DNA from: Glycera tridactyla
Lineage: Eukaryota
Length of the DNA stretch: 64,000 nt
Direction of reading: 5' to 3'
Assembly (NCBI GenBank): GCA_965644265.1
Contig: CBFFRO010000099.1
Location: forward strand, 1-64,000
Shown: in pieces, positions 8,316 through 51,415 of the stretch
Position numbering within the stretch: the first letter of the stretch is position 1
How the letters are laid out: every line of letters starts with the position of its first letter
Made by a program: the position numbers and the translations under genes
The notes under the pieces: model-generated
The model's input: the letters and a program-made list of their open reading frames with translations, nothing else
What the model was told of the DNA's origin: nothing
The model's database searches: none

Positions 8316-8318
<3 letters not shown>

Positions 8319-8385
<67 letters not shown>
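8319..8385. repeat. (CA)n microsatellite
   Basis: Directly visible. Confidence 1.
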
Positions 8386-8386
<1 letters not shown>

Positions 8387-19781: not shown

Positions 19782-19926
19782 NNNNNNNNNNNNNNNNNNN
19801 NNNNNNNNNNNNNNNNNNNNNNNNNNNNNNNNNNNNNNNNNNNNNNNNNNNNNNNNNNNNNNNNNNNNNNNNNNNNNNNNNNNNNNNNNNNNNNNNNNNN
19901 NNNNNNNNNNNNNNNNNNNNNNNNNN
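19782..19926. other. Assembly gap (145 N)
   Basis: Run of N followed by GT-rich sequence. Confidence 1.
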
Positions 19927-27200: not shown

Positions 27201-27596
27201 AACTGTTCGTTGTTCATGTACGACTTTATGAAAGTCATCAAGTTCTGTATAGTATAGAGTCTCCATTGAGTGTTCTGCACTTGACCATTGTGGTATTCAC
27301 AATCGTTGAACATCATGATTATAAGTCCAATTGGTGGTACACAAAACTAAAGAAGAGTTAACGAGAAATCGGATGTACTAGTTCTCTTTTTCAACCTTAA
27401 TCTCGCTTATAGGTGTGACTAGCTTGAATTTTTCGTTTATATGAGCACGTTGCAGATATAAATTCCATTCCAGTATTTGGCTGTTCGGTCCTACCACCAA
27501 TGTAGACAATATGAAGTCTGTGGTATAGTGAATACAACTTACCATGAAAAGATATAAAATATAATGAGTAGCTCCATCATATTGAAGCAGTCAATA

Positions 27597-27804
27597 GGCC
27601 TATTTGACTGGACAGTTTCCGTTGAGTGGGCATTGCAGGACTTAACGGTTGTAGCCCAGCCGGATGGGTTTTGTTTAACGAGTTCAACGTAGTCAAATTA
27701 CCGTTGAGATTCGTATGCAATGAAAAAGTGTTGGGTGCCACCTGAATACGAAAAGTGCTCAACAGCCTGGCCGTACTCAACGAAACTGACCAGTCTAATA
27801 GGCC
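27597..27804. mobile_element. MITE with ~30-bp TIR and TA TSD at the left edge of the tandem array
   Basis: GGCCTATTTGACTGGACAGTTTCCGTTGAGT versus reverse complement of right end GGCCTATTAGACTGGTCAGTTTCGTTGAGT; TA on both sides. Confidence 0.9.
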
Positions 27805-28214
27805 TATATACACTGTCCTCTGCTGTTGATATCGAAAGAATGCCCATTTCTTCATGAGCTGTACAACATGGACCCGATGAGATAGCTGAGGAATAGCTCT
27901 TGCGACAATGATGTTTGGAACAGCATCCAGACATGATGATGACGTCAAATTGCTTTTCATGTTTAGAGAGCCAACCAATTAGTTGCTACTTTTGCTTGTC
28001 TTTCTCATGATTATTTTTCATGATCGTGGTCTCTGCCCGATAGAACATGGATTGAATAAGAGACCGAATAGTGATCGCCATGTGAAGATTTGATGACTCA
28101 AGAGGAGCTGGCCTTCAAGTTGCAGGTCCTTTCTCATGCAGCGGTGCTTTTTGGGTAGTATGACCTTAGAAATGCTTTATATTCATGTGTGTGGTGTTTC
28201 TGATGTGTTTTCAG

Positions 28215-28437
28215 TGATGAGCCTGACTTCAAGAAGAGTCAAGGGTCCGTGGAGAGTGGTGGCCTGGGATCAATGGGCGGAAGCGACGAAGACAGTATGG
28301 CCGATTACGACACGGAGGTGGACCCGGGTAAGTTCAACGAGGACGGGTCCTTTATTGGCCAGTACGGCGGCAAGACGAAGAAAGAAGAGAAAGAGCCCGA
28401 TGCCGCCTCCCCGTCTGCACTCTCCACTTTTGTATAA
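28215..28437 (+). CDS. Nrg: L1CAM-family terminal coding exon, copy 1
   Basis: GTGTTTTCAG acceptor; phase 2 matches exon 7522-7609; encodes (T)DEPDFKKSQGSVESGGLGSMGGSDEDSMADYDTEVDPGKFNEDGSFIGQYGGKTKKEEKEPDAASPSALSTFV*, with DS(M)ADY and FNEDGSFIGQY L1 signatures and T-F-V PDZ ligand. Confidence 0.97.
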
Positions 28438-31400
28438 TACACCATCCACTCTGTGGCCCCCCTTGATATTATCGAGTGTCCGAAGCAGATGCTGTTTTCG
28501 TGGTTGAGTCTACATCAATGTATCTGCTTGCGTGGATGTGTGCCAGTGTGACAAAATGCTTGCAACCTGCTCCAGTGACATGTGCCAATCTAGACACAGA
28601 AACAAGTGCAATATGGAGGTCCGTTTCATTTCTGGAAGCTGCAGTCTTCATGGTCATTCGTGGTGGTTCAGAGGTCGACAAGCACCATTATTTTCCGTAG
28701 GAATCGAGAGATTGGAAGTGCCGGTTCATCAGATGGCTTCGAGATAATCGCTAGTGTTCCTTCGTTCATTGACCGTGAAAATATTTCAGGCATTTGTGAT
28801 AATGTAACAATGTCAGGTCATCTTGGTCAGAAGGTGCTAGCCAGTTTCGAATCGACAGGGATTGAGCAGCTCTCAGGGGACCTCCTGGACCTTCAAATCC
28901 ATCATGTGGGTTAAACCCCGAAATGTACTTGCCAGGACTGAATCTTCAAATCATTGAGCGAAAGAAAACATCACAGGAATCTGCAATGAACACTTAACCG
29001 GTGGCATGTGCTGGATTTGCTTCGTGCTGTTTTGACTCGTATTCAATTTCGTGTTTGTGTGCGTAACTTTAAGACGTCCTGGTCTGACAGAAGCTGGAGC
29101 AGTCATAGTCGGGGGGCAAGAGGTCAGCCCGTCTCATACGCAAACCAAAGGAAGCAGACATTACCAGATCTGAGATAGGAAAATGACTGATATTGGTCGA
29201 TGTTGGACCACGTAAAAATTTCTGCTATTCAAGGTGGACTTGTTAGGAGCATTGATGCTGTGTAGAAACGGCCGAGAGCAAAGCAAGTGACAATGCACCT
29301 TTAGTTGGCCTAAGAGTGAATTCTTAGCCATCGCTTGTTTTCTGCAAATCCTGGTGGTGAATGATGCTTCTTGTCAAGCATGCAGTGGTCGGTAGATGAT
29401 TGCATGCCTGCCAAGATACTCCAGGCATTGTCACCATGATTGGAAAAGAATTGATGTCCGGGAATTGACACTTTGGCCCTTTAGTTTTGATCTGACGTTT
29501 GCTTCATTGTGCATCTAGCATGGTTTCTGTTGATGAGTTATAGTATTTTGTTTGTGCTGAATAGGATCCCGAGTCATGGTATCAGCCACTCGTGTAACAG
29601 TGGCTGATTGTGCATGTATGGATGGTGGTGAATACTCATTCTTGGACCGTAGCTCAAGAAATTTCATGATTCGTTCCTATCCGATCTGTTAATTTTATGA
29701 TGAGGTATTCCCGAATGGGTGTACTTATATGTGTATACTTGACCACAAAATCCTCTCTGTTTGAGCAAGTAAATTCTTGACTTGCAAGCAATCTCTAGTT
29801 TCTCTTGAGATATGCTTTGATTATCTACTTCACTCCAGAACAGTGATGTTTGCATATTGTTTATCTGGAAGACAGTAAGGATCCTTGATGATATCTCTTT
29901 TTGATTTGACATGCAATCAAAACAACTATATTTAGATATACATTTGTCACTGGCATCTTGGTGTTCTATTCAGCACTCACGGAAAATATACTCACTATCA
30001 TATTTTTTGAAATAAAGTTGCCTTATATTTTTTGAAACTGTGCTTCAACTATGCATGTGGTACACACTTTAGTCAGATTTTGTTCCTGTATTAGCTTTAT
30101 GAAAGCGCCATCTAATGGTGGGACTGAGGAGAGATTAATTATGCTGCTTGGTCTAGAGATGGCGCTAGGTGTAGTCATGAGTCCATTATTTTCACTGGTC
30201 CCCCTATGTCTGTTTTCATGCCATGTGTGTATTTCACTGCCAAAACCCATCATCATACGTAGAACTGTACATAGACATTGTGAAGGTGTGTATGCAAGTG
30301 TGAGCTTGAGCGTGAGGGTATGCGTGCAATCGTGTGTGCTTGAGCATGTGTGTGAGTGATAGATGGGTGCTTGCATAATCACACTTACAGTACAGTGGCA
30401 ATATGGGCCATAGCTGAATCTTGCTTTTTAAACGTGCTATAAGATCACACCATTTGTTATTGTCACTTAGGAATAACCTCTATGGAATCGTGTAAGGTTG
30501 TAAGCAGCATAGTATCTCTAGAAGAGGGAGCATATCAGCTCGGTATGATGAAAGAAAATGCATCAAATCTGCATCAAGTTGACAGAATCAAAACCAAAGT
30601 TTACTCACTGCACAATCTGAGGGAACATCATAAGTAATAGTGGCAGATTTTGATGGATAAAGGCAAATGACTCTCGCACTGTTTTCTCTGTCTATGTCAA
30701 AAGTGGATTTCTCTTTTTGAATGATGAGTGAGATTGGAGAAACCAACCTGATGGAGAGAGAAGTGATAGTTTTGCAATGGGCCAGTTCAGGTGTGAAATC
30801 AACTGATCCACAAAGTGTATTAAAGAGAAATACTGGTCACAAATATGGGACTGGAATGTCAATCGCTGAAATGTGTATATTCGAACGATTACAGTGTTCA
30901 TAGCAGGACAAGACAGTCGATGAATAATATGGAATGTGCAGTTGTCCATGTATTATGTGAGTGTTGTGGGATATACAAGGGTATTGTTACTTGTTCTAAA
31001 TAATTCAAGTTGCAGTGAAATGTGTCTGCTTGCATCGCTGTCTTTTGATGACCTCGTGACATTCTCTGTCATGAGAGAACATAAGAGTTGACAACAGTTT
31101 CATATAACTTGCCATTGAAATTTATGACCAATTGCTAGCTGTATGTGGATTGGCGTGTACAAGTAAATGTCTGGTTAGGCGAAACAATTATCCTGATTAT
31201 TTATTAATGTTTTTTTGTTTCTCCTAATGATATTAAAATCGTAATTCAGTTCACTGTTGCATCACCATGGAAAGATGACATTTCAAAAGATTGATGATGA
31301 TGAATAGATGAACAGATAAATGCATATAGAAATAGATAAATCGAAGGACAGTTTGATGAAGATAGTCAGAAATTGTTTGTTTGGGATTTTTTTGTATCAT

Positions 31401-32804
31401 TGATTACATGCAATGGACCTGTGAGATGGCAAAACTTCTCCCTTTTGGTAACCCACTGAGGAATTATGGCAACATACATCCATGGCTGGGACCATGTCTG
31501 ATTTCGAATGATAACAATTGAAATGTGAAATAATAATTGCGCAACAGGTCACAACTGGATGGATTTTTTGAGATCCAATTGAGTCTTCCTGACGGCTTTT
31601 AGATTAGGGGCATGGTGGCTGTCAACCACTTGCTTCATGTGTCCACCTGTTTTGTGTCCTCAGGTGCCATCTGGCTGGATGTTTCAGAACAGATGATTTT
31701 TAAGAATATGTGGCATCATATTCAGAATGTAGCTTCAATTTATCAACATTTCTGCTTTCTGATTGTTCAGTTGCTTTATTTGCCTTCGCATTCACATCAT
31801 CTGATGTCAGGTGAATGTTTTTCTTTGTTATCTTCAGTCTGTTCATTTAATGATTTGCACATTATATTATCAGTATTTTGTTTTTCATGAACAAAGGTGC
31901 TTGTATGCCTGGCCCATGTCAGTTTATATTTGAGTAAATATGAGTTTGTACTGTTATTTGTAGAATTTGTATTATACCAGTCTGTTGTTCAGCCGGAACC
32001 ACTTCATGACTCCATGTCATGCATTTGAACAGAGAAGAATCAGGCATGGTTGCTCGAATCACTGCTATTTTAACCAATGATGCTGACAGATTTTCTGTTT
32101 CCCTACTCTCTTGTGTTCAGGGTCTCTGCAAGTGACAATGCCGAGACCCCCAGTAGGTCTGGAAGGCATGGCATACATAACCATCAGCTTGATTCATGCC
32201 ATTAAACTCTAACAAACCAACAAACGGTATCTTATTACAATACAAAGGATATTATCTTTGGGTAGAATGCAATCAAGACGGGGAAGGTCTCAGTAGAACA
32301 TCTGTAATGCACGACCACAAGGTATAATGCCAGAATTTGAATTTCATGACAAAGATTGCTTGGTAGCTAGTCAGTATAAGAGGACAATCAGAAACCAGTC
32401 AGCGCTTTCGTGTCAATTTCTGCAGGATAAGCCAACTTACCTCATATTCACATTACGTTTACTGTCCAAAATCATCAATATAATCAGAGAGAGTAAATCA
32501 TGATCATCGATACTGTCCTATGTACAAGTTAAGAGTATACAGTGGGTTATTTGGGTATGGCAGCAGAGTTCTGGTGGCCATCTTTGTGTAGTATACCATT
32601 AAAGTGTGTTGCTTTGTTCTGAGTCGATGCTGCCATCATCCGGCAGTCGTCTTTTTTGGTGGCTTGTGTGTACCATACTAGTCATCTCACTATATTATGA
32701 GAGTCATGTATAAAAAAAGGAACTGAATCTGTTTATTTTGATATCTGTATGTTAAATGTTGAATGTTTTACTATGATGGAAAGATGTCATCATTCAGATT
32801 TGTC

Positions 32805-32810
32805 AATAAA
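32805..32810 (+). promoter_or_regulatory. Likely distal polyadenylation signal, copy 1 (proximal AATAAA also at 30011-30016)
   Basis: AATAAA after AT-rich UTR-like sequence, followed by GT-rich sequence and a (GT)n tract at ~32906; implies a 3'UTR of ~4.4 kb. Confidence 0.55.
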
Positions 32811-34834
32811 AGATGTTTGTCCGACCAGTGTCTCTGGTTAGACTGTATGAACATGGCTGCTTATTATAGTATCTTTGGTGTGGTTGGTGCATCGGAGTGA
32901 GCTGAGTGTGTGTGTGTTTGTGTGTGTGTGTGCATGTATTCATGAGTGAGTATATGTCTGAGTCCAAGTGTGTGTACAGTTTGTGTCTTGCAGCTAGTGA
33001 CGAGCCATTGTATCATGTTCACTTTGTTTATGGGGACATCTCGACTCTTGGAGTGTTGTCTGAATCGTCATCGGATTGGAACACTGCTAATTATTGTTTC
33101 ACTTGACGACTGTTAAACCCAGTGAAGTCAGACCATATGGAATGCAATATCACCTACTATCAGCATCAAATATGCAGCCACAAAAAAGCATGTTTGTAAT
33201 GGGCGCCCTCTAATGTTTAAGCCACCAATCCCACAATGTTGTGAAGAATCTAGACCTCGGATTGGGATGATTATTCCCTGTGATTCTGACAGGTCAGTAC
33301 AGGAGAGATGGTCAGTAACAAAAGTGTCCAACATAGCCCATGCTAGTTGCGCAAAAACAGCATGGTAACAGTATATGTAGTTACTATATCACTCCGGTAT
33401 GATTACAATGGTTTCAAGATTTAGTGCAATCATCATAGTTTCCAGTCATTGCAATAATAATCATTGCCTTGGTATGGTTTGAATACTATGGTAGTAACCA
33501 TCACATGAGTTAATCAAACATGGTTTTCCAATATCTGGAGGATAATCTTGTTGAGCTGGCTATGATAATATAGTGCTAGTTTTGGGTAACAAGATGTATT
33601 GATGATAAGGATTGTTGGCCGTAGGTGATGTTTCAATCAATCTGTGGTTTCAGTTTGCTGGGTTTATTGATGTCTTAATTTACCATAGACACTTCTAGGG
33701 TGAGCCGTGTAATGTGGGAATCTTGATGAGTGCTTGAGTCACAGAGTATGAGCTTGATTAGGATAGCTGTATTTATTCTTGCAAAGTGAGTCTTTGCGAG
33801 TGGTGCATCCACCCGCACTTAATCCGATGCTTTCACTTGTTGAAAATAAAATTTGTGCTTACTCCATATTGTGTGCAAGTGTGGAACAGATATGTGGCTT
33901 TTGAATATAAATATATATGACAGCTAGTGCGTGGGTGTGTGGAGTGAAGAACATTGCAGTCATAATGATGTCTATGTATTTGGCTGTATACTGAGAGTAC
34001 ATTGCTTGTGGCCCATTCTTTTTCGCTGAACGCTGGTCTGATTGCAAGACAACAGACCATATCAAGCACCTTGTTATGATACCATTGCATGCATGTGCAT
34101 GTAAGAGAGAGCCAGCCACTGTCCTCAAGAAATGTGTACACATACTTATCATCTAGGGAATACTGTATTTTGATTCAAATCGGCTTGAGTGTGTTTTTCA
34201 CCTTCCTCCTCTTCTGTGCGATGTTTCGTTCACCAACTTACAAAATCGAGCATGGATTGAAGGTGTATTTCATTTGTCTTCTCAATCCATGTAATGCCAC
34301 ACTAAAATCTTTGACCCAAATTATGTTTATCATATTTGTGATAATTTTTACTGTGTCCTCTTTCTCTTGAATCCCATTTTGATGCTTTGTTAATCAATGT
34401 TGGGAGGCAGATCTGCTTGTGAGCGACTAGTGGATAGCTTTTGATAGTCAATGGTGGTGTACATGTTGTCCGATGCACAGTTGGATTTGGTTGCCCTCTT
34501 CACTGTTGAAGATGAATGTATCAGAGGTAATTCACTGATTATTAGATTGAGAATGATGCCTGTAGAGCATCCAGCTTTCATAGAACACTGAGCATACATA
34601 ATCCTTCATGTTGATACAAGCCATTAATCCCCTAACCAAACAAGGGTCAGAATGAGAAAGGGATAATGCTTTGCAAGAGCTTTGGTGCCATCTCTAGCCG
34701 TTTGGAAGTCTCAAACATTGTCTGTTCAATCATCCTCTGTGCTGTGAGCATCATTCCATAAAAGTCTGAAGCCAGATAGTCTAATAGTTGAGTTTGGTCC
34801 ATAAGAGCATATGATTTTAATGCAGTGACACTGT

Positions 34835-34985
34835 TTAATGAGTGAAGACAAGTGGAAATAAGCCTTTGGATTTGAAAGCAATGGAAAGCTGGACATTAAT
34901 TCTGATTATCAATATAAGCGAAGACAAGTGGGAATAAGCCATATGGTTTTTAGAGCAATGAATAACTAGACGTAATTCTGACCAT
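34835..34985. repeat. ~76-bp degenerate minisatellite (about 2.5 units at 46266-46460 and 58009-58205; shortened here)
   Basis: AAAGCAATGGAAAGCTGGACATTAATTCTGA recurs at 76-77-bp spacing (46273, 46349, 46426). Confidence 0.8.
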
Positions 34986-37594
34986 GTTGATGAGAGAATA
35001 CAAGTGGTCAGCCTACTCTTGCTGACGCTAATTGGCAAGAGGTTTCACATCATGGCCTCCTAGTAATTGTGTTGACTGTTGGTGAAAATCAGCCATGCAA
35101 GAGAATCATTTCAAAATCAGCCATGCAAGAGAATCATTACTTTTGGATGGGTGAGACGCAATAGGTTTGATATTGGTGTAATTCCATATCTTTCAATTCT
35201 TGTTCTAGTTATCACTATTCACCTCTATCCTTACATTTGATTGTGTGATTGTTTTGGAACTGGTTGTTGGGCATTTGGTGCATCAGCTAATACACTGACT
35301 TCCTTTAAGCTGCGGATGATGTGGATCAAGCCTTGGCATCATTATTCCACTAAATATTTGGTGTGGGGCAGGTTACGGGTCGTTGCTAGCCGACAATGCA
35401 CCATTTGTGGCCCCAAACCAATTGCATCCTTGGATGGCATAAGCCATAGTCATCTCCCTTCAGTGATTTGCCACTCAGACACACCACCTTGGTGAGGACC
35501 TCAGCCATCTCAAATTCATTATCAGTATTGCAAATATTTTTGTTCAACTTATTGCTTATGGGTATATCTGTTTTGATAAGATAGTGACACTGCTCATCCG
35601 AGTCAACAACTGACATTCAAGTTGCTATAATACTCATATGATTATTTATTGATGAACAGGTGCCATTGTATCTCATTCCCAATACTCGTCATCATTAGTT
35701 GGCTTGATGTGTATCTGGTGGCATTCACTGATGGCATCACCTTCACCTGCATCCCCATCAACCGCCTGATGCCCAGCATCCGATTCATCCTTTGCTGGAT
35801 GAACTCAACTCGATCATGATCCTATGATAGATGTGGAAGCTTCATGCCATAGGATTATGGAGTGAAGTGAACTTCTTTCAGCAATGGATCGAATCACGAA
35901 CCATCTTTTCATCAGGGTTTATGTTACAGTTGAACACATTTTTTGAGTTTCACATAAGTTTGTAATGAATCCTCCTGTCCTTCCAAGAGAAGGACTTTGA
36001 TTAAAGCTTTCCTCGTTATTTTGTATGCCACTGATGTATGTTGAATAAAATTTCATGTATCAAAAAAGGCAGTGTATGTCTTTCGTGTTCTCTTCCAAGG
36101 TATGAGTGTGTGAAATGACATGTTGGGAATTGTATATGCATCATCTTCCTTTTTTCTTCTGGCAATCAGGCCTGATCACAATAATTGAACTGGATGAATT
36201 TGATAGTAGAATTTCAACAACCAATGGGGACCCAGATGGAGAAGTCTTGAATGATCCAAATCCATACTAATTGCACGGGCATCAAGAACCTTATCCTATG
36301 AATTTAATTCAAGGCCGAATTTTGAAGTTTCTCGAATAATTCTCTTCGGAGGACCAGTAGAGATCTGAATAAGGTACATTGAGAGCTATGTGATATTCTT
36401 TACAAACAGATTCCAATAGCCCTTGCTGCTCGCTCGATTGACAGCAGCATGCATTCTCTTGCAAAACGTCAACAATTGTTAGCTGCAACTGGACACCCTG
36501 CTGCATTTGGGGCCATTGGACTTGAGTTCATGTTAGAATGGAACAAACATCCAAGGGGATGCAGCATGAAGCACATATGACACTGGATCAGTGCCCTCCT
36601 ATACAGCCAATTTCTGAGCCTACAAAGAACTATAAAAACAAATTTCATGTAACATCGCAGTATGATAATGATATAGCTGGAAGAACAGGGATACGAACAA
36701 GAAACGCTAGAGCTTGCTCCCAAACTAAGTTTCCAAGACATCCAGGGAAAACCTGCTGATGAAGATGCCTGGCAATCTAAAACAAATGTGACAAAGTCTA
36801 AATTATAGAAACAGGACGACTACAGAATTCTCCACAATGATAAATGAATACACAACATCATAGAAGATGGAGAAGATGGAACTGAATCTACTAACTCATG
36901 AGTTTTTCCCCCATGAGGGAAAATAAGACATATTCACCCATTGTATCGTGACAACATATACCAAGTACCTATTCACACCTGAGTGAAGTAATGTGATGGT
37001 CCCATTCAGTGCTGTCCACACACATGCAAGTACCTCCTGTGCAAGAAGTACAGATCCTATAGATCTGTGTGATGGTGCAGGTATGTTACTGAATGGTGAA
37101 CCTTGTCCATTTCGGTCACCCATCTGAGGAGGAGTCCTGTGTCAGGTTGCCGAAACACCATTCAGTGAACCGGCTGTGAGAATAGGGTCAATAGATATTG
37201 AATCATGTTGTCAGCAGTTTGTGGTTTACCACTCCAAATACGCTTCTCTTTTTCATAATTACGAACTCTCACCTCTAAATCCATTGAGGGCCCAAGAGGC
37301 AGTATCAGTGACTTGAGCAACTAGATTTCACACATTCAGATAGCATGAGTGCCACAGTATAGCCCTGGTGGTGCAAAGAAGATGGTGAGTAACTGATCAA
37401 TCCACATTCTCATGAAGGTACTGTTGTGCTGATGTATCACAAGATTTGGTTGCCGAGTAAGATCTCTGTTACTGTCTGAACAGTCAGACCTGCTCGAGAG
37501 ATCACCTCCTACCTGCAAAGATGGATCACCCTGAGTTGCAACATGACATTATTCTCTACGGAAAACAACCTCTATCACTGGCACAATGCCTGTA

Positions 37595-37756
37595 CAGTCA
37601 AACCTGCTCGAGAGATCGCCTCCTACCTGCAAAGATGAACCACCCTGAGTTGCAACATGATATCCTCTAGAGAAAATGACCTCTATTCAAAGACCACCTG
37701 TCCCCAAAAACCACTTTTCAATGCAACCAGGAGTGGTCTCTGTACATAGGTCCACT
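37595..37756. mobile_element. Degenerate TA-target MITE preceded by a direct duplicate of its left half (~37481-37575); repeated at 49116-49277
   Basis: CAGTCAAACCTGCTCGAGAGATC start; ACCTGCTCGAGAGATC..CTCCTACCTGCAAAGATG appears twice. Confidence 0.7.
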
Positions 37757-38399
37757 CCACCTTACTAGGACATCTAGACTAGAGTAGCATTTTACACTGA
37801 AACAGGTGGGGATAATCTTGGTTTGATTGCATCACTGAGCCTGACCCTACTTCGTCCTGCATATTGAATTTGTACAGGAGCAGATTTTGTAGCAGAATAT
37901 CCAATGTATAAGCAAACGTATAGATATCAAAGTTGTTTTATTTCTTCATACAACCAATACGGGATCGACCTCATTATGAGCATTTATTAGTCAAATTTGG
38001 TAACATGGTTAACTCGATCACAAGCCACCCAGCAGCAACAGCATGGACTCAGTGTGTTCGCACTCTTAAGAAAATTTGGGAAGATTCACCTATTTTGAAT
38101 GATTCACCGTAGCGAACGAATGCTAGGAGGTGGACTGTTCATTTGCCTGTTTGAGTCTAACGTCCTCTCAACCGCCTTGGGTTATATGAGACTGAATAAG
38201 TGAAAATGCTGACATTGCGACATGCCCTGGACCAGCCAGCCCTGTCCATAGAACATGACCAGGCAGTGATCATGATCAGGCTGCTTTCAGAACTGGCAGT
38301 GGGCATTGGAGTGTGCATGGAATCAATCAGATGACTTGATGACATCACACCATGCATTCCCTTTGTTTTTAGCACTGAACCATGTAATTAGCTGAATGC

Positions 38400-38660
38400 T
38401 ATTTATGTTATTCCAATCGACAATTGTTTTCGGTATCAGTCGACACGACTCCAAACTCCAAAGTGTGAGGATCCCATGCCCTAGAGCTGTACTCTAGTAT
38501 TGGTCGTACTAGGATCATATATGATAAAAGTTTCAGTTCTGGACTGCAAGCACCAATATTACGTCTGAGTACGCATAACACTCTACTGGCCCTGCTGCAA
38601 ATGTAATCTATGTGTGTGTTCCAGTTCATTTTTTCATGGAGTTGCACCCCTAGATACCAT
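38400..38660 (-). mobile_element. Truncated non-LTR retrotransposon (L2/CR1-group LINE) ORF2 C-terminal remnant
   Basis: YLGVQLHEKMNWNTHIDYICSRASRVLCVLRRNIGACSPELKLLSYMILVRPILEYSSRAWDPH plus PKTIVDWN, the typical post-RT motifs of these LINEs, with an internal deletion. Confidence 0.9.
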
Positions 38661-39007
38661 GGGTTGGATTCAACTGTTGCCAATGGAGCACCACAAAGGT
38701 GATACTGGTGTAGGTGGTACGTGGTGGTGTAGGTGGAGTTATGTAGGTGATGGTGGTGTTTACTCGAGTGAGGGGAACTGCATCACTGGCGCATGAATAC
38801 AAGCTGCCGATACAAGTTGCTGCTCATTGTTTGAACCAAGCAGACATGTACTTCTATTATACACATAGTAAGGTTTCTATTCCACATAATCACCAGGATG
38901 GCAGTGCTCTAGATTTCATTTCCCATTATAGTTCTTGGTCTACCAATCGCTTATTGGCTCAGGCTGACCTGACCTTGACCGTGACCTCGTCGTTGTCGTT
39001 GTCATTA

Positions 39008-39220
39008 GGCCTATTCGACTGGTAGGTCTCGTTGAAAGTGCATTGACGGAAATTTACTCAACGGTCGTAGCCCACCCGAATAGATTTCGTTTAACGAGTT
39101 CAACGTAGTCAAATGACCGTTGAGATTCGTATGCAATGAAAAAGTGTTGAGTGCCACCTGAATACGAAAAGTGCTCAACAGCCTGGCCGTACTCAACGAA
39201 ACTGACCAGTATAATAGGCC
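39008..39220. mobile_element. GGCCTATT-TIR MITE at the unit 1/2 junction (chimeric)
   Basis: TA flanks; right half matches 27673-27804, while left half and left flank differ. Confidence 0.9.
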
Positions 39221-39626
39221 TATTTACACTGTCCTCTGCTGTTGATATCGAAAGAATGCCCATTTCTCCATGAGCTGTACAACATGGACCCGATGAGATA
39301 GCTGAGGAATAGCTCTTGCGACAATGATGTTTGGAACAGCATCCAGACATGATGATGACGTCAAATTGCTTTTCATGTTTAGAGAGCCAACCAATGAGTT
39401 GCTACTTTTGCTTGTCTTATGATTATTTTTCATGATCTTGGTCTCTGCCCGATAGAATACGGATTGAATAAGAGACTGAATTGTGACCGTCATGTGAAGA
39501 TTTGACGACTCAAGAGGAGCTGGCCTTCAAGTTGCAGGTCCTTTCTCATGCAACAGTGCTTTTTGGGTAGTATGACCTTAGAAATGCTTTATATTCGTGT
39601 GTGTGGTGTTTCTGATGTGTTTTCAG

Positions 39627-39849
39627 TGATGAGCCCGACTTCAAGAAGAGTCAAGGGTCCGTGGAGAGTGGTGGCCTGGGATCAATGGGCGGAAGCGACG
39701 AAGACAGTATGGCCGATTACGACACGGAGGTGGACCCGGGTAAGTTCAATGAGGACGGGTCCTTTATTGGCCAGTACGGTGGCAAGACGAAGAAAGAAGA
39801 GAAAGAGCCCGATGCCGCCTCCCCGTCTGCACTCTCCACTTTTGTATAA
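39627..39849 (+). CDS. Nrg: Duplicated terminal exon, copy 2 (intact; protein identical to copy 1)
   Basis: Acceptor intact; three synonymous differences from copy 1; usage unknown. Confidence 0.8.
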
Positions 39850-42800
39850 TACACCATCCACTCTGTGGCCCCCCTTGATATTATCGAGTGTCCGAAGCAG
39901 ATGCTGTTTTCGTGGTTGAGTCTACATCAATGTATCTGCTTGCGTGGATGTGTGCCAGTGTGACAAAATGCTTGCAACCTGCTCCAGTGACATGTGCCAA
40001 TCTAGACACAGAAACAAGTGCAATATGGAGGTCCGTTTCATTTCTGGAAGCTGCAGTCTTCATGGTCATTCGTGGTGGTTCAGAGGTCGACAAGCACCAT
40101 TATTTTCCGTAGGAATCGAGAGATTGGAAGTACCGGTTCATCAGATGGCTTCGAGATAATCGCTAGTGTTCCTTCGTTCATTGACCGTGAAAATATTTCA
40201 GGCATTTGTGATAATGTAACAATGTCAGGTCATCTTGGTCAGAAGGTGCTAGCCAGTTTCGAATCGACAGGGATTGAGCAGCTCTCAGGGGACCTCCTGG
40301 ACCTTCAAATCCATCATGTGGGCCAAACCCCGAAATGTACTTAGCAGGACTGAATCTTCAAATCATTGAGCGAAAGAAAACATCACAGGAATCTGCAATG
40401 AACACTTAACCGGTGGCATGTGCTGGATTTGCTTCGTGCTGTTTTGACTCGTATTCAATTTCGTGTTTGTGTGCGTAACTTTAAGACGTCCTGGTCTGAC
40501 AGAAGCTGGAGCAGTCATAGTCGGGGGGCAAGAGGTCAGCCCGTCTCATACACAAACCAAAGGAAGCAGACATTACCAGATCTGAGATAGGAAAATGACT
40601 GATATTGGTCGATGTTGGACCACGTAAAAATTTCTGCTATTCAAGGTGGACTTGTTAGGAGCATTGATGCTGTGTAGAAACGGCCGAGAGCAAAGCAAGT
40701 GACAATGCACCTTTAGTTGGCCTAAGAGTGAATTCTCAGCCATCGCTTGTTTTCTGCAAATCCTGGTGGTGAATGATGCTTCTTGTCAAGCATGCAGTGG
40801 TCGGTAGATGATCTCATGCCTGCCAAGATACTCCAGGCACTGTCACCATGATTGGAAAAGAATTGATGTCCGGGAATTGACACTTTGGCCCTTTAGTTTT
40901 GATCTGACGTTTGCTTCATTGTGCATCTAGCATGGTTTCTGTTGATGAGTTATAGTATTTTGTTTGTGCTGAATAGGATCCCGAGTCATGGTATCAGCCA
41001 CTCGTGTAACAGTGGCTGATTGTGCATGTATGGATGGTGGTGAATACTCATTCTTGGACCGTAGCTCAAGAAATTTCATGATTCGTTCCTATCCGATCTG
41101 TTAATTTTATGATGAGGTATTCGCAAATGGGTGTACTTAGATGTGTATACTTGACCACAAAATCCTCTCTGTTTGAGCAAGTAAATTCTTGACTTGCAAG
41201 CAATCTCTAGTTTCTCTTGAGATATGCTTTGATTATCTACTTCACTCCAGAACAGTGATGTTTGCATATTGTTTATCTGGAAGACAGTAAGGATCCTTGA
41301 TGATATCTCTTTTCGATTTGACATGCAATCAAAACAACTATATTTAGATATACATTTGTCACTGGCATCTTGGTGTTCTATTCAGCACTCACGAAAAATA
41401 TACTCACTATCATATTTTTTGAAATAAAGTTGCCTTATATTTTTTGAAACTGTGCTTCAACTATGCATGTGGTACACACTTTAGTCAGATTTTGTTCCTG
41501 TATTAGCTTTATGAAAGCGCCATCTAATGGTGGGACTGAGGAGAGATTAATTATGCTGCTTGGTCTAGAGATGGCGCTAGTTGTAGTCATGAGTCCATTA
41601 TTTTCACTGGTCCCCCTATGTCTGTTTTCATGCCATGTGTGTATTTCACTGCCAAAACCCATCATCATACGTAGAACTGTACATAGACATTGTGAAGGTG
41701 TGTATGCAAGTGTGAGCTTGAGCGTGAGGGTATGCGTGCAATCGTGTGTGCTTGAGCATGTGTGTGAGTGATAGATGGGTGCTTGCATAATCACACTTAC
41801 AGTACAGTGGCAATATGGGCCATAGCTGAATCTTGCTTTTTAAACGTGCTATAAGATCACACCATTTGTTATTGTCACTTAGGAATAACCTCTATGGAAT
41901 CGTGTAAGGTTGTAAGCAGCATAGTATCTCTAGAAGAGGGAGCATATCAGCTCGGTATGATGAAAGAAAATGCATCAAATCTGCATCAAGTTGACAGAAT
42001 CGAAACCAAAGTTTACTCACTGCACAATCTGAGGGAACATCATAAGTAATAGTGGCAGATTTTGATGGATAAAGGCAAATGACTCTCGCACTGTTTTCTC
42101 TGTCTATGTCAAAAGTGGATTTCTCTTTTTGAATGATGAGTGAGATTGGAGAAACCAACCTGATGGAGAGAAGGGTGATAGTTTTGCAATGGGCCAGTTC
42201 AGGTGTGAAATCAACTGATCCACAAAGTGTATTAAAGAGAAATACTGGTCACAAATATGGGACTGGAATGTCAATCGCTGAAATGTGTATATTCGAACGA
42301 TTACAGTGTTCATAGCAGGACAAGACAGTCGATGAATAATATGGAATGTGCAGTTGTCCATGTATTATGTGAGTGTTGTGGGATATACAAGGGTATTGTT
42401 ACTTGTTCTAAATAATTCAAGTTGCAGTGAAATGTGTCTGCTTGCATCGCTGTCTTTTGATGACCTCGTGACATTCTCTGTCATGAGAGAACATAAGAGT
42501 TGACAACAGTTTCATATAACTTGCCATTGAAATTTATGACCAATTGCTAGCTGTATGTGGATTGGTTTGTACAAGTAAATGTCTGGTTAGGCGAAACAAT
42601 TATCCTGATTATTTATTAATGTTTTTTCGTTTCTCCTAATGATATTAAAATCGTAATTCAGTTCACTGTTGCATCACCATGGAAAGATGACATTTCAAAA
42701 AATTGATGATGATGAATAGATGAACAGATAAATGCATATAGAAATAGATAAATTGAAGGACAGTTTGATGAAGATAGTGAGAAATTGTTTGTTGGGGATT

Positions 42801-44211
42801 TTTTTGTATCATTGATTACATGAAATGGACCTGTGAGATGGCAAAACTTCTCCCTTTTGGTAACCCACTGAGGAATTATGGCAACATACATCCATGGCTG
42901 GGACCATGTCTGATTTCGAATGATAACAATTGAAATGTGAAATAATAATTGCGCAACAGGTCACAACTGGATGGATTTTTTGAGATCCAATTGAGTCTTC
43001 CTGACGGCTTTTAGATTAGGGGCATGGTGGCTGTCAACCACTTGCTTCATGTGTCCACCTGTTTTGTGTCCTCAGGTGCCATCTGGCTGGATGTTTCAGA
43101 ACAGATGATTTTTAAGAATATGTGGCATCATATTCAGAATGTAGCTTCAATTTATCAACATTTCTGCTTTCTGATTGTTCAGTTGCTTTATTTGCCTTCG
43201 CATTCACATCATCTGATGTCAGGTGAATGTTTTTCTTTGTTATCTTCAGTCTGTTCATTTAATGATTTGCACATTATATTATCAGTATTTTGTTTTTCAT
43301 GAACAAAGGTGCTTGTATGCCTGGCCCATGTCAGTTTATATTTGAGTAAATATGAGTTTGTACTGTTATTTGTAGAATTTGTATTATACCAGTCTATTGT
43401 TCAGCCGGAACCACTTCATGACTCCATGTCATGCATTTGAACAGAGAAGGATCAGGCATGGTTGCTCGAATCACTGCTATTTTAACCAATGATGCTGACA
43501 GATTTTCTGTTTCCCTACTCTCTTGTGTTCAGGGTCTCTGCAAGTGACAATGCCGAGACCCCCAGTAGGTCTGGAAGGCATGGCATACATAACCATCAGC
43601 TTGATTCATGCCATTGAACTCTAACAAACCAACAAACGGTATCTTATTACAATACAAAGGATATTCTCTTTGGGTAGAATGCAATCAAGACGGGGTCTCA
43701 GTAGAACATCTGTAATGCACGACCACAAGGTATAATGCCAGAATTTGAATTTCATGACAAAGATTGCTTGGTAGCTAGTCAGTATAAGAGGACAATCAGA
43801 AACCAGTCAGCGCTTTCGTGTCAATTTCTGCAGGATAAGCCAACTTACCTCATATTCACATTACGTTTACTGTCCAAAATCATCAATATAATCAGAGAGA
43901 GCAAATCATGATCATCGATACTGTCCTATGTACAAGTTAAGAGTATACAGTGGGTTATTTGGGTATGGCAGCAGAGTTCTGGTGGCCATCTTTGTGTAGT
44001 ATACCATTAAAGTGTGTTGCTTTGTTCTGAGTCAATGCTGCCATCATCCGGCAGTCGTCTTTTTTGGTGGCTTGTGTGTACCATACTAGTCATCTCACTA
44101 TATTATGAGAGTCATGTATAAAAAAGGAACTGAATCTGTTTATTTTGATATCTGTATGTTAAATGTTGGATGTTTTACTATGATGGAAAGATGTCATTAT
44201 TCAGATTTGTC

Positions 44212-44217
44212 AATAAA
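44212..44217 (+). promoter_or_regulatory. Distal polyadenylation signal, copy 2
   Basis: AATAAA at the position homologous to 32805. Confidence 0.5.
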
Positions 44218-44310
44218 AGATGTTTGTCCAACCAGTGTCTCTGGTTAGACTGTATGAACATGGCTGCTTATTATAGTATCTTTGGTGTGGTTGGTGCATC
44301 GGAGTGAGCT

Positions 44311-44358
<48 letters not shown>

Positions 44359-47300
44359 TCATGAGTGAGTATATGTCTGAGTCCACGTGTGTGTACAGTT
44401 TGTGTCTTGCAGCTAGTGACGAGCCATTGTATCATGTTCACTTTGTTTATGGGGACATCTTGACTCTTGGAGTGTTGTCTGAATCGTCATCGGATTGGAA
44501 CACTGCTAATTATTGTTTCACTTGACGACTGTTAAACCCAGTAAAGTCATACCATATGGAATGCAATATCACCTACTATCAGCATCAAATATGCAGCCAC
44601 AAAAAAAGCATGTTTGTAATGGGCGCCCTCTAATGTTTAAGCCACCAATCCCACAATGTTGTGAAGAATCTAGACCTCGGATTGGGATGATTATTCCCAG
44701 TGATTCTGACAGGTCAGTACAGGAGAGATGGTCAGTAAAAAAAGTGTCCAACATAGCCCATGCTAGTTGCGCAAAAACAGCATGGTAACAGTATATGTAG
44801 TTACTATATCACTCCGGTATGATTACTATGGTTTCAAGATTTAGTGCAATCATCATAGTTTCCAGTCCTTGCAATAATAATCATTGCCTTGGTATGGTTT
44901 GAATACTATGGTAGTAACCATCACATGAGTTAATCAAACATGGTTTTCCAATATCTGGAGGATAATCTTGTTGAGCTGGCTATGATAATATAGTGCTAGT
45001 TTTGGGTAACAAGATGTATTGATGATAAGGATTGTTGGCCGTAGGTGATGTTTCAATCAATCTGTGGTTTCAGTTTGCTGGGTTTATTGATGTCTTAATT
45101 TACCATAGACACTTCTAGGGTGAGCCGTGTAATGTGGGAATCTTGATGAGTGCTTGAGTCACAGAGTATGAGCTTGATTAGGATAGCTGTATTTATTCTT
45201 GCAAAGTGAGTCTTTGCGAGTGGTGCATCCACCCGCACTTAATCCGATGCTTTCACTTGTTGAAAATAAAATTTGTGCTTACTCCATATTGTGTGCAAGT
45301 GTGGAACAGATATGTGGCTTTTGAATATAAATATATATGACAGCTAGTGCGTGGGTGTGTGGAGTGAAGAACATTGCAGTCATAATGATGTCTATGTATT
45401 TGGCTGTATACTGAGAGTACATTGCTTGTGGCCCATTCTTTTTCGCTGAACGCTGGTCTGATTGCAAGACAACAGACCATATCAAGCACCTTGTTATGAT
45501 ACCATTGCATGCATGTGCATGTAAGAGAGAGCCAGCCACTGTCCTCAAGAAATGTGTACACATACTTATCATCTAGGGAATACTGTATTTTGATTCAAAT
45601 CGGCTTGAGTGTGTTTTTCACCTTCCTCCTCTTCTGTGCGATGTTTCGTTCACCAACTTACAAAATCGAGCATGGATTGAAGGTGTATTTGATTTGTCTT
45701 CTCAATCCATGTAATGCCACACTAAAATCTTTAACCCAAATTATGTTTATCATATTTGTGATAATTTTTACCGTGTCCTCTTTCTCTTGAATCCCATTTT
45801 GATGCTTTGTTAATCAATGTTGGGAGGCAGATCTGCTTGTGAGCGACTAGTGGATAGCTTTTGATAGTCAATGGTGGTGTACATGTTGTCCGATGCACAG
45901 TTGGATTTGGTTGCCTTCTTCACTGTTGAAGATGAATGTATCAGAGGTAATACACTGATTATTAGATTGAGAATGATGCCGGTAGAGCATCCAGCTTTCA
46001 TAGAACACTGAGCATACATAATCCTTCATGTTGATACAAGCCATTAATCCCCTAACCAAACAAGGGTCAGAATGAGAAAGGGATAATGCTTTGCAAGAGC
46101 TTTGGTGCCATCTCTAGCCGTTTGGAAGTCTCAAACATTGTCTGTTTAATCATCCTCTGTGCTGTGAGCATCATTCCATAAAAGTTTGAAGCCAGATAGT
46201 CTAATAGTTGAGTTTGGTCCATAAGAGCATATGATTTTAATGCAGTGACACTGCTTCCACGGTTTCGATTTCAAAGCAATGGAAAGCTGGACATTAATTC
46301 TGACTATCTTAATGAGTGAAGACAAGTGGAAATAAGCCTTTGGATTTGAAAGCAATGGGAAGCTGGACATTAATTCTGATTATCAATATAAGCGAAGACA
46401 AGTGGGAATAAGCCATATGGTTTTTAGAGCAATGAATAACTAGACGTAATTCTGACCATGTTAATGAGAGAATACAAGTGGTCAGCCTACTCTTGCTGAC
46501 GCTAATTGGCAAGAGGTTTCACATCATGGCCTCCTAGTAATTGTGTTGACTGTTGGTGAAAATCAGCCATGGAAGAGAATCATTTCAATATCAGCCATGG
46601 AAGAGAATCATTACTTTTGGATGGGTGAGACGCAATAGGTTTGATATTGGTGTAATTCCATATCTTTCAATTCTTGTTCTAGTTATCAATATTCACCTCT
46701 ATCCTTACATTTGATTGTGTGATTGTTTTGGAACTGGTTGTTGGGCATTTGGTGCATCAGCTAATACACTGACTTCCTTTAAGCTGCGGATGATGTGGAT
46801 CAAGCCTTGGCATCATTATTCCACTAAATATTTGGTGTGGGGCAGGTTACGGGTCGTTGCTAGCCGACAATGCACCATTTGTGGCCCCAAACCAATTGCA
46901 TCCTTGGATGGCATAAGCCATAGTCATCTCCCTTCAGTGATTTGCCACTCAGACACACCACCTTGGTGAGGACCTCAGCCATCTCAAATTCATTATCAGT
47001 ATTGCAAATATTTTTGTTCAACTTATTGCTTATGGGTATATCTGTTTTGATAAGATAGTGACACTGCTCATCCGAGTTAACAACTGACATTCAAGTTGCT
47101 ATAATACTCATATGATTATTTATTGATGAACAGGTGCCATTGTATCTCATTCCCAATACTCGTCATCATTAGTTGGCTTGATGTGTATCTGGTGGCATTC
47201 ACTGATGGCATCACCTTCACCTGCATCCCCATCAACCGCCTGATGCCCAGCATCCGATTCATCCTTCGCTGGATGAACTCAACTCGATCATGATCCTATG

Positions 47301-49969
47301 ATAGATGTGGAAGCTTCATGCCATAGGATTATAGAGTGAAGTGAACTTCTTTCAGCAATGGATCGAATCACGAACCATCTTGTCATCAGGGTTTATGTTA
47401 CAGTTGAACACATTTTTTGAGTTTCACATAAGTTTGTAATGAATCCTCCTGTCCTTCCAAGAGAAGGACTTTGATTAAAGCTTTCCTCGTTATTTTGTAT
47501 GCCACTGATGTATGTTGAATAAAATTTCATGTATCAAAATAGGCTGTGTATGTCTTTCGTGTTCTCTTCCAAGGTATGAGTGTGTGAAATGACATGTTGG
47601 GAATTGTATAAGCATCATCTTCCTTTTTTCTTCTGGCAACCAGGCCTGATCACAATAATTGCACTGGATGAATTTGATAGTAGAATTTCAACAACCAATG
47701 GGGACCCAGATGGAGAAGTCTTGAATGATCCAAATCCATACCAATTGCACGGGCATCAAGAACCTTATCCTATGAATTTAATTCAAGGCCGAATTTTGAA
47801 GTTTCTCGAATAATTCTCTTCGGAGGACCAGTAGAGATCTGAATAAGGTACATTGAGAGCTATGTGATATTCTTTACAAACAGATTCCAATAGCCCTTGC
47901 TGCTTGATTGACAGCAGCATGCATTCTCTTGCAAAACGTCAACAATTGTTAGCTGCAACTGGACACCCTGCTGCATTTGGGGCCATTGGACTTGAGTTCA
48001 TGTTAGAATGGAGCAAACATCCAAGGGGCTGCAGCATGAAGCACATATGACACTGGATCAGTGCCCTCCTATACAGCCAATTTCTGAGCCTACAAGGAAC
48101 TATAAAAACAAATTTCATGTAACATCGCAGTATGATAATGATATAGCTGGAAGAACAGGGATACGAACAAGAAACGCTAGAGCTTGCTCCCAAACCAAGT
48201 TTCCAAGACATCCAGGGAAAACCTGCTGATGAAGACGCCTGGCAACCTAAAACAGGAACAGAAACCAAGATTGCCTATCCTCATAATACATGGACAGGGT
48301 ATACCAAATGTGACAAAGTCTAAATTATAGAAACAGGACAACTACAGAATTCTCCACAATGATAAATGAATACACAACATCATAGAAGATAGAGAAGATG
48401 GAACTGAATCTACTAACTCATGAGTTTTTCCCCATGAGGGAAAATAAGACATATTCACCCTTTGTATCGTGACAACATATACCAAGTACCTATTCACACC
48501 TGAGTGAAGTAATGTGATGGTCCCATTCAGTGCTGTCCACACACATGCAAGTACCTCCTGTGCAAGAAGTGCAGATCCTATAGATCTGTGTGATGGTGCA
48601 GGTATGTTACTGAATGGTGAACCTTGTCCATTTCGGTCACCCATCTGAGGAGGAGCCCTGTGTCAGGTTGCCGAAACACCATTCAGTGAACCGGCTGTGA
48701 GAATAGGGTCAATAGATATTGAATCATGTTGTCAGCAGTTTGTGGTTTACCTCTCCAAATACGCTTCTCTTTTTCATAATTACGAACTCTCACCTCTAAA
48801 TCCATTGAGGGCCCAAGAGGCAGTATCAGTGACTTGAGCAACTAGATTTCACACATTCAAATAGCATGAGTGCCACAGTATAGCCCTGGTGGTGCAAAGA
48901 AGATGGTAAGTAACTGATCAATCCACATTCTCATGAAGGTACTGTTGTGCTGATGTATCACAAGATTTGGTTGCCAAGTAAGATCTCGGTTACTGTCTGA
49001 ACAGTCAGACCTGCTCGAGAGATCACCTCCTACCTGCAAAGATGGATCACCCTGAGTTGCAACATGACATTATTCTCTACGGAAAACAACCTCTATCACT
49101 GGCACAATGCCTGTACAGTCAAACCTGCTCGAGAGATCGCCTCCTACCTGCAAAGATGAACCACCCTGAGTTGCAACATGATATCCTCTAGAGAAAATGA
49201 CCTCTATTCAAAGACCACCTGTCCCAAAAAACCACTTTTCAATGCAACCAGGAGTGGTCTCTGTACATAGGTCCACTCTACCTTACTAGGACATCTAGAC
49301 TAGAGTAGCATTTTACACTGAAACAGGTGGGGATCATCTTGGTTTGATTGCATCACTGAGCCTGACCCTACTTCGTCCTGCATATTGAATTTGTACAGGA
49401 GCAGATTTTGTAGCAAAATATCCAATGTATAAGCAAACGTATAGATATCAAAGTTGTTTTATTTCTTCATACAACCAATACGGGATCGACCTCATTATGA
49501 GCATTTATTAGTCAAATTTGGTATGCCAAACTATCGAATGCTGATTTATGCTTAGCAAAAAAAATCTGGTAACATGGTTAACTGGATCACAAGCCACCCA
49601 GCAGCAACAGCATGGACTCAGTGTGTTCGCACTCTTAAGAAAATTTGGGAAGATTCACCTATTTTGAATGATTCACCGTAGCGAACGAATGCTAGGAGGT
49701 GGACTGTTCATTTGCCTGTTTGAGTCTAACGTCCTCTCAACCGCCTTGGGTTATATGAGACTGAATAAGTGAAAATGCTGACATTGCGACATGCCCTGGA
49801 CCAGCCAGCCCTGTCCATAGAACATGACTAGGCAGTGATCATGATCAGGCTGCTTTCAGAACTGGCAGTGGGCATTGGAGTGTGCATGGAATTAATCAGA
49901 TGACTTGATGACATCACACCATGCATTCCCTTTGTTTTAGCACTGAACCATGTAATTAGCTGAATGCTA

Positions 49970-50225
49970 TCTATGTTATTCCAATCGACAATTGTTTTCG
50001 GTATCAGTCGACACGACTCCAAACTCCAAAGTATGAGGATCCCATGCCCTAGATCTGTACTCTAGTATTGGTCGTACTAGGATCATATATGATAAAAGTT
50101 TCAGTTCTGGACTGCAAGCACCAATATTGCGTCTGAGTACGCATAACACTCTACTGGCCCTGCTGCAAATGTAATCTATGTGTGTGTTCCAGTTCATTTT
50201 TCATGGAGTTGCACCCCTAGATACC
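49970..50225 (-). mobile_element. LINE ORF2 remnant, copy 2 (extra 1-nt frameshift)
   Basis: MNWNTHIDY...LVRPILEY...WDPH and PKTIVDWN; T-run one base shorter than in copy 1. Confidence 0.9.
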
Positions 50226-50574
50226 ATGGGTTGGATTCAACTGTTGCCAATGGAGCACCACAAAGGTGATACTGGTGTAGGTGGAACGTGGTGGTGTAGG
50301 TGGAGTTATGTAGGTGATGGTGGTGTTTACTCAAGTGAGGGGAACTGCATCACTGGCGCATGAATACAAGCTGCCGACACAAGTTGCTGCTCATTGTTTG
50401 AACCAAGCAGACATGTACTTCTATTATACACATAGTAAGGTTTCTATTCCACATAATCACCAGGATGGCAGTGCTCTAGATTTCATTTCCCATTATAGTT
50501 CTTGGTCTACCAATCTCTTATTGGCTCAGGCTGACCTGACCTTGACGGTGACCTCGTCGTTGTCGTTGTCGTTA

Positions 50575-50786
50575 GGCCTATTCGACTGGTAGGTCTCGTT
50601 GAAAGTGCATTTACGGAAATTTACTTAACGGTCGTAGCCCACCCGAATAGGTTTCGTTTAACGAGTTCAACGTAGTCAAATAACCGTTGAGATTCGTATG
50701 CAATGAAAAAGTGTTGAGTGCCACCCGAATACGAAAAGTGCTCAACAGCCTGGCCGTACTCAACGAAACCGACAGTCTAATAGGCA
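50575..50786. mobile_element. GGCCTATT-TIR MITE at the unit 2/3 junction (chimeric)
   Basis: Same structure as 39008-39220. Confidence 0.9.
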
Positions 50787-51192
50787 TATTTACACTGTCC
50801 TCTGCTGTTGATATCGAAAGAATGCCCATTTCTTCATGAGCTGTACAACATGGACCCGATGAGATAGCTGAGGAATAGCTCTTGCGACAATGATGTTTGG
50901 AACAGCATCCAGACATGATGATGACGTCAAATTGCTTTTCATGTTTAGAGAGCCAACCAATGAGTTGCTACTTTTGCTTGTCTTATGATTATTTTTCATG
51001 ATCTTGGTCTCTGCCCGATAGAATACGGATTGAATAAGAGACTGAATTGTGACCGTCATGTGAAGATTTGACGACTCAAGAGGAGCTGGCCTTCAAGTTG
51101 CAGGTCCTTTCTCATGCAGCAGTGCTTTTTGGGTAGTATGACCTCAGAAATGCTTTATATTCATTTGTGTGGTGTTTCTGATGTGTTTTCAG

Positions 51193-51415
51193 TGATGAGC
51201 CCGACTTCAAGAAGAGTCAAGGGTCCATGGAGAGTGGTGGCCTGGGATCAATGGGCGGAAGCGATGAAGACAGTATGGCCGATTACGACACGGAAGTGGA
51301 CCCGGGTAAGTTCAACGAGGACGGGTCCTTTATTGGCCAGTACGGCGGCAAGACGAAGAAAGAAGAGAAAGAGCCCGATGCCGCCTCCCTGTCTGCACTC
51401 TCCACTTTTGTATAA
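51193..51415 (+). CDS. Nrg: Duplicated terminal exon, copy 3 (intact; V>M and P>L relative to copy 1)
   Basis: Acceptor and stop intact; GTG>ATG and CCG>CTG plus three synonymous differences from copy 1. Confidence 0.8.

Follow-up and report, generated by a model that had tools for sequence, protein, structure and literature searches.

A tandem array at an L1CAM-type gene of the annelid Glycera tridactyla bears the trace of homologous exchange between two MITEs at its boundary

Introduction

Copy number changes mediated by Alu/Alu pairs and other repeats through nonallelic homologous recombination (NAHR) leave a hybrid repeat at the junction of the tandem duplication or deletion. Chimeric elements of the Galileo/Foldback type in Drosophila are assembled from parts of different lineages, carry nonmatching target site duplications (TSDs), and have been read as products of ectopic recombination (PMC3573991). 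Concerted evolution of tandem gene arrays has been discussed for the maize p1 clusters (PMC3014980). Here, we describe a locus of the marine worm Glycera tridactyla (Annelida) at which an array of 11.5-kb units, each with the terminal exon of an L1CAM/neuroglian-type gene, begins inside a miniature inverted-repeat transposable element (MITE). The window is the first 64 kb (64,000 nucleotides) of contig CBFFRO010000099.1, a 72-kb unplaced contig (C118 below) of the 2.04-Gb animal assembly GCA_965644265.1. The MITE at the left array edge and the MITEs at the internal junctions have different left halves and one common right half, and the change from one state to the other falls within the element.

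Results

The array in two haplotypes

The allelic locus lies on the chromosome-scale contig C17 (22.43 to 22.50 Mb, minus strand); its flanks are colinear with those of C118 and differ from them by 2.0 to 4.5% substitutions, and we treat the two loci as two haplotypes. C118 carries a left-edge MITE (MITE A), two junction MITEs (J), and three unit copies; C17 carries MITE A, three junction MITEs, and four unit copies. The ends of the array were sought in C118 to the end of the contig at 72,000 and in 100 kb of C17. Self-BLAST places the start of unit homology inside the MITE, at 27640, 39056, and 50623, with units 97.6 to 98.6% identical, and successive MITEs are spaced 11,411 and 11,567 bp apart. 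The features of the array in the window are as follows.

27596..27805, plus strand: MITE A at the left array edge, 210 bp, with its own left ∼81 bp, which carry a 5-bp deletion
27640..39055, plus strand: unit 1, 11,416 bp by BLAST; its homology to the other units starts within MITE A
37771..39003, plus strand: the unit "tail" (unit positions 10233 to 11567), found genome-wide at internal junctions only
39007..39221, plus strand: junction MITE J1, 215 bp, flanking triplets ATT/ATT, recombinant in its right half
39056..50622, plus strand: unit 2, 11,567 bp
50574..50787, plus strand: junction MITE J2, 214 bp, identical in type to the three junction MITEs of C17
50623..64000, continuing to C118 66721, plus strand: terminal copy, whose unit positions 1 to 8245 are 98.7% identical to unit 2

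An earlier reading of the letters of the window, referred to here as the sequence-only reading, had placed the three MITEs at 27597-27804, 39008-39220, and 50575-50786, and these positions hold to within 1 to 2 bp. The window also contains two runs of N, at 1483-1639 and 19782-19926.

MITE A and the junction MITEs share the right half of the element only

The left flanks of the two types differ, GCAGTC-AAT at A versus GTTGTC-ATT at the junctions. The sequence-only reading had given the first copy a left half and flank of its own and the junction copies a different one, and we find the same arrangement, with the TCGTTGTCGTTGTC flank at both junctions. A and the J copies share the right ∼130 bp of the element plus the next 8+ kb; the left flank and the left ∼81 bp are peculiar to A. 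To quantify this pattern, we scored the derived states of A and J against the consensus of 33 other family copies. Shared derived states make up 1/25 on the left versus 18/21 on the right (Fisher p = 8e-9): in the left 83 bp, 14 derived states are private to A, 9 are private to J, and 1 is common, and in the right 131 bp, 18 are common, 2 are private to A, and 1 is private to J. The best other genomic match to the shared right half reaches ≤89% identity. Given the sharing of derived states and the lack of any other copy above this level, we conclude that the right halves descend from one sequence and that the left halves are independent insertions. The earlier claim of a common right half from GTTTAACGAG onward was correct about its start and its single descent but too strong about its sameness, since A differs from most junction copies at 6 of 132 sites (4.5%).

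A and J are last discordant at element position 81, and they first share a derived state at position 99; a two-rate fit still allows a switch point as far left as position 49. Alignment of the MITE copies thus maps the exchange to within element positions 49 to 98, most likely 82 to 98, inside the element, as the sequence-only reading had anticipated. The switch region is the most conserved core block of the family (...GTTTAACGAGTTCAACG...), and a switch at this place points to exchange of two MITEs by homology. Both breakpoints lie in register inside the MITE family; that the array breaks within a MITE, and in register, is supported both by the start of homology within the element and by the switch in derived states.

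The elements belong to a MITE family

The element is a MITE of a real family, as seen from its terminal inverted repeat (TIR), TSD, size, and copy number. Copies of this ∼212-bp TIR family are 207 to 223 bp long, small, noncoding, and numerous: a first look gave 1,874 to 1,914 candidates genome-wide, 541 loci match an exact two-anchor pattern, and the family occupies ∼0.02% of the genome. The TIR is ∼31 bp, and the ends of the family consensus are AGGCCTATTCGACTGGTCGGTTTC(C)GTTGAGT and its reverse complement. A 3-bp AWT TSD is indicated by concordant flanks at 17/33 copies, versus a chance expectation of 28% (p = 0.004); TAT/TAT and GAT/GAT, both rare, are among the pairs that agree, and an empty-site comparison within a dispersed transposon, the T element described below, is consistent with a 3-bp duplication. 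The family target looks like AWT between a C and a G. Family copies with AAT or ATT flanks are concordant in 15/20 cases and discordant in 5/20, and the latter may reflect common exchange between copies of the family.

Exchange within the element continued after the first junction

Fixed differences between A and the other copies in both haplotypes number 22 at element positions 9 to 81, followed by one each at 108 and 143. At positions 152, 196, 199, and 213, A and J1 of C118 together differ from the other four junction copies. J1 is thus a recombinant, junction-type at 108 and 143 and A-type from 152 to 213, and this mosaic indicates that exchange between the first and later copies continued inside the element. 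All five junction MITEs of the two haplotypes, on the other hand, have a left half and flank of identical type, an indication that the junction arose once.

The differences that separate A from most junction copies reach the last bases of the element (213 of 214) and then cease: differing sites amount to 6/132 in the right half versus 0/8480 in the 8.5 kb that follow (p = 1e-11). Such a pattern could arise if MITEs had inserted independently at one target site, or if a resident MITE had been partly overwritten by gap repair or gene conversion, so that the boundary within the element would be only apparent. The quarter of family copies with discordant triplets, suggesting frequent exchange between elements, is in line with this scenario. 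It is nevertheless very unlikely in our view, because the right halves share 16 to 18 derived states while no other copy is >89% identical, and hence they are one sequence by descent; moreover, the left flanks are unrelated unique sequences, and a consensus-like donor tract would have wiped out the shared derived states that lie between the differing sites.

The interior of the array is homogenized and its edges are divergent

Interior units differ by 0 to 1.7%, compared with 2 to 4.5% for the allelic flanks (2.0 to 2.2% for the left flank). Divergence at the array edges is higher, 4.5% (6/132) on the left and 4.7 to 7.6% on the right, both above the allelic level of the left flank. On the right, the terminal copy has an additional ∼480 bp (59043-59522) relative to unit 2; relative to the terminal copy, all interior units have a common ∼480-bp deletion at unit position 8245/8250 (window 35826/35831 and 47300/47305). 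Beyond the extra ∼480 bp, the equivalent of unit positions 8250 to 10232 differs from unit 2 by 4.7 to 7.6% in substitutions, and the divergence steps up from 1.3% to 4.9% exactly at unit position 8245/8250, the site of the interior deletion.

Relationships among the units are mosaic and follow neither position nor haplotype. Unit 3 of C118 is nearest to units 1 and 2 of C17 over unit positions 1.5 to 8.3 kb, and unit 1 of C118 is nearest to unit 4 of C17 over unit positions 0.2 to 1.5 kb. Divergent edges around a homogenized interior fit one old founding event followed by unequal exchange, and unequal exchange among units also accounts for the presence of three copies in one haplotype and four in the other. 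The locus thus shows the features of a tandem array under concerted evolution: units that are closer to each other than the flanks are, mosaic relationships, and variable copy number. No unduplicated haplotype, which the sequence-only reading had suggested looking for, was found, as both haplotypes carry the array.

Because C118 is a short unplaced contig, its repeats and junctions might be suspected to come from misassembly of a haplotig. We regard this as the most improbable of the explanations considered: the two haplotypes were assembled independently and have the identical junction MITE, tail, and terminal structure, yet they are distinct in copy number, in the substitutions and indels of their units, and, by 2 to 4.5%, in their flanks.

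The right end of the array has been remodeled by a transposon

In both haplotypes, homology of the last copy to the unit ends at unit position ∼10232 (C118 66721). At the next base, C118 66722, a dispersed element, T, begins with its left terminus, the exact point at which >25 genomic copies of T start. On C4 and C10, fuller copies of T measure ∼4.1 kb and have inverted termini of ∼137 bp; the copy at C4 84238958-84243085 has ACT/ACT flanks. The copy at the array end (C118 66722-69619) consists of 2.7 kb, a nested inverted MITE, and ∼18 bp more, and then stops, whereas the full copies on C4 and C10 extend ∼1.2 kb further to the inverted terminal repeat. Because homology ends flush with the transposon terminus, insertion of T into the last unit is the best explanation, and the loss of the right third of T shows a later deletion. 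The original right end of the array is erased in both haplotypes.

The nested MITE, at C118 69385-69601, is the only family copy downstream of the array in C118. It was considered as a lost terminal element and rejected, being ∼83% identical, inverted, and a simple insertion in T. We likewise rejected, for this assembly, the possibility that the tail is filler copied from elsewhere, because no sites other than the five junctions carry the tail or the J-left flank. The C17 allele of T has a ∼750-bp insertion (C17 ∼22439506 to 22440261) that is not in C118.

The tail contains two fragments of dispersed repeats, 38462-38707 and 38757-38980. The latter is a 224-bp repeat present as a solo copy adjoining the junction MITE; genome-wide, it is found in pairs ∼4.1 kb apart (e.g., C7:17136519/17140655 and C10:85128779/85132909), which resemble the terminal direct repeats of a long terminal repeat (LTR)-type element. 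A Pfam search of the open reading frames (ORFs) in the T element and of the repeat fragment in the tail returned no matches.

Building or trimming: which MITE is the hybrid

The pattern at the left edge is symmetrical. It fits a hybrid J (left half from a second element, B, and right half from A) and a hybrid A (A-left/B-right) equally, and the two possibilities imply different histories of the array.

The explanation that we favor, to which we give about an even chance of being right, is that a founding unequal exchange between two MITEs created the array. Two co-oriented ∼212-bp MITEs ∼11.5 kb apart, A in the last intron of the L1CAM-type gene and B downstream of the 3' end of this gene, would have exchanged by homology in the conserved core, through either unequal crossing-over or a homology-guided template switch, two routes that are indistinguishable here. 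The product would be the order flank, A, unit, B-left/A-right hybrid, unit, B. The 11.5-kb units would then have become the substrate for unequal exchange and gene conversion, giving rise to three and four copies with interiors 98 to 100% alike, and the two edges would have retained ∼5% divergence. Subsequently, the last copy would have received a ∼4.1-kb TIR transposon at unit position 10232, and a later deletion would have removed the right part of the transposon and everything beyond, including the terminal B and the preceding 1.3 kb. This explanation is the more parsimonious one, as a single event accounts for the array as well as the hybrid.

Alternatively, the array may have existed beforehand, built by a MITE-independent duplication, of which the phase is no longer visible, with an intact MITE B in each unit, and a deletion between an upstream A and the first B, by NAHR or single-strand annealing (SSA), may have trimmed it; the first MITE would then be the hybrid. 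The symmetrical left edge is equally compatible with this history. As a rule, direct repeats give rise to deletions more readily than to duplications, by SSA or NAHR, and the trimming would have been such a deletion. Tandem duplication without a MITE also occurs at this locus, as shown by a sub-repeat, S, within the terminal copy:

58029-60707, 60708-63383, and 63384-66026, plus strand: three copies of the 2.68-kb sub-repeat S

S is present in three copies on C118 and ∼1.3 copies on C17, and its junction (...CCTTTG-AG-GCTGGAC...) is nonhomologous with a 2-bp filler. We nevertheless hold the trimming history to be possible but doubtful. It needs one more independent event and leaves the origin of the array unexplained, and the similar age of the two edges becomes a coincidence. 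In its strict variant, in which the founding junction of the unit is 10232/10233 and the transposon is ancestral flank, the breakpoint must have hit the transposon terminus to the base.

Lineage markers within the family speak for an intact A and a hybrid J. The nearest genomic relatives of J-left are 93 to 95% identical to it, compared with 86 to 89% for the shared right half and 80 to 84% for A-left. Relatives of J-left include C42:52637351, C29:6869852, C32:71748698, C34:19526232, and C11:113003057, and those of A-left include C13:12521399, C1:17116192, and C11:23994997. The 40 best matches to the right half contain none of the 7 closest relatives of J-left, and it is difficult for the trimming history that J-left has many relatives at 93 to 95% without a similar right half. 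The right half belongs to a rare T-insertion lineage (1 to 2% of copies), which mostly has G at position 29, as does A (J has A there). Furthermore, C1:17116192, among the best relatives of A-left, combines T59/T81 of A with the T-insertion type of right half. Thus, both G29 in A-left and a relative of A-left with the rare right-half type suggest that A is the intact element. When lineage markers are discounted, the right half would carry a private mutation load (∼4.6%) nearer to that of J-left (∼3 to 5%) than to that of A-left (∼9%), as expected if the first MITE were the hybrid.

Several observations weigh against the founding exchange. The flanking triplets are ATT/ATT at J; at A, they are AAT (27593-27595) and ATA (27806-27808) on C118 and AAT/ATT in the C17 allele. 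Concordance at J and discordance at A (AAT/ATT) give a likelihood ratio of ∼3 for an intact J, and mismatched TSDs are an accepted mark of chimeric elements (PMC3573991), as the trimming history would have it. At position 68 of the T-insertion right-half lineage, the J state, C, outnumbers the A state, G. Left type and right type are not associated in a two-by-two comparison of genome-wide pattern counts (5/432 versus 2/116, p = 0.64). The six differences of the right half are confined to the element, a step sharper than a simple edge effect predicts. Finally, the founding exchange leads one to expect a MITE with a junction-type left half at the far end of the array, as the sequence-only reading had predicted, naming its absence as evidence against the proposal. 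None is present in C118 to 72,000 or in 100 kb of C17, just as the trimming history expects, and in a whole-assembly search, the 1.3-kb tail and the J-left flank are present only at the five internal junctions. Rescue of the founding exchange despite the absent terminal B requires two extra events. Since the right end was remodeled by T insertion and truncation, however, we consider this test void rather than a valid negative.

Other comparisons were neutral. Left type and similarity of the right half are not correlated among the 33 copies, and neither element is an outlier in a uniform-decay test against the consensus (z = −0.8 for A and +0.3 for J). A looser genome-wide pattern for left and right types returned mostly another repeat family. 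The start of the unit and the left flank are each unique sequence, and they therefore give no evidence for either tail-unit or flank-unit contiguity across the MITE as the ancestral state.

We therefore describe the locus as a homologous exchange between MITEs at the boundary of an array and do not claim a MITE-founded duplication as proven. The sequence-only reading had proposed a junction chimera formed by NAHR between two co-oriented MITEs; homologous exchange stands (1/25 versus 18/21), but that reading overlooked the possibility that the first MITE is the hybrid.

The unit carries the terminal exon of an L1CAM-type gene

An ORF lying ∼400 bp to the right of each MITE ends in ...FNEDGSFIGQYGGKTKKEEKEPDAASPSALSTFV followed by a stop codon. 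In the window, its copies are as follows.

28204..28437, plus strand: terminal-exon ORF ending in a stop, copy 1, encoding the ...FNEDGSFIGQY... tail
39616-39849: terminal-exon ORF, copy 2
51182-51415: terminal-exon ORF, copy 3

The ORF is the terminal exon encoding the ankyrin-binding end of an L1CAM/neuroglian-type protein, and the array multiplies this exon and the 3' untranslated region (3'UTR), not the whole gene. The FIGQY exon is intact in all seven unit copies (three in C118 and four in C17), and amino acid changes are found only in copy 3 of C118 (V to M and P to L). Copy 3 also has a 177-bp inverted duplicate (52062-52238) of 51860-52036, forming a near-perfect hairpin in the 3'UTR region that the other copies lack. 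The extra FIGQY exons may act as alternative terminal exons. A broader proposal would be that the MITE family is a habitual recombination substrate in a repeat-prone genome and that it seeded a polymorphic array of three to four intact alternative FIGQY exons, each with its own 3'UTR and differentially used; we think that this is unlikely.

Discussion

The locus offers a natural example, in two haplotypes, of a short TIR element that served as the homology for structural change at a conserved neuronal gene. It also illustrates that in a homogenized array the age of the founding event can still be read from the edges (∼5% divergence) despite a young-looking interior. At the same time, it calls for caution, as a hybrid repeat at one edge of an array does not tell whether the array was built or trimmed there. 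The rearrangement is of an ordinary, transposon-mediated kind, and nothing about it is mechanistically new.

Among the known systems, Alu/Alu NAHR is similar in that it involves short (∼200- to 300-bp), diverged (∼75 to 85%), co-oriented dispersed repeats, with breakpoints in register, a hybrid element, and a switch in the longest block of identity. The present elements differ in being TIR MITEs in an annelid and not short interspersed elements (SINEs). Of the features of a repeat-mediated tandem duplication, the locus has the hybrid junction in register; MITE A, in the place of the proximal parental repeat, is ambiguous, with mismatched triplets but lineage markers that lean toward its being intact; and the distal parental repeat is missing, so that duplication and deletion are indistinguishable. 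The chimeric elements of Galileo, too, consist of two parts from different lineages with nonmatching TSDs. Galileo, however, is associated with inversions and with exchange among long TIRs, unlike the direct-repeat rearrangement seen here at the edge of an 11.5-kb array, and the TSD of the present family is only 3 bp with two common states and hence carries little information.

As a tandem array, the locus differs from ribosomal DNA (rDNA) and the maize p1 arrays (PMC3014980) in having only three to four large units, each made of a terminal exon and intergenic DNA instead of a whole gene. It resembles them in its homogenized interior (0 to 1.7%) between edges of ∼5%, its mosaic units, and its copy number polymorphism.

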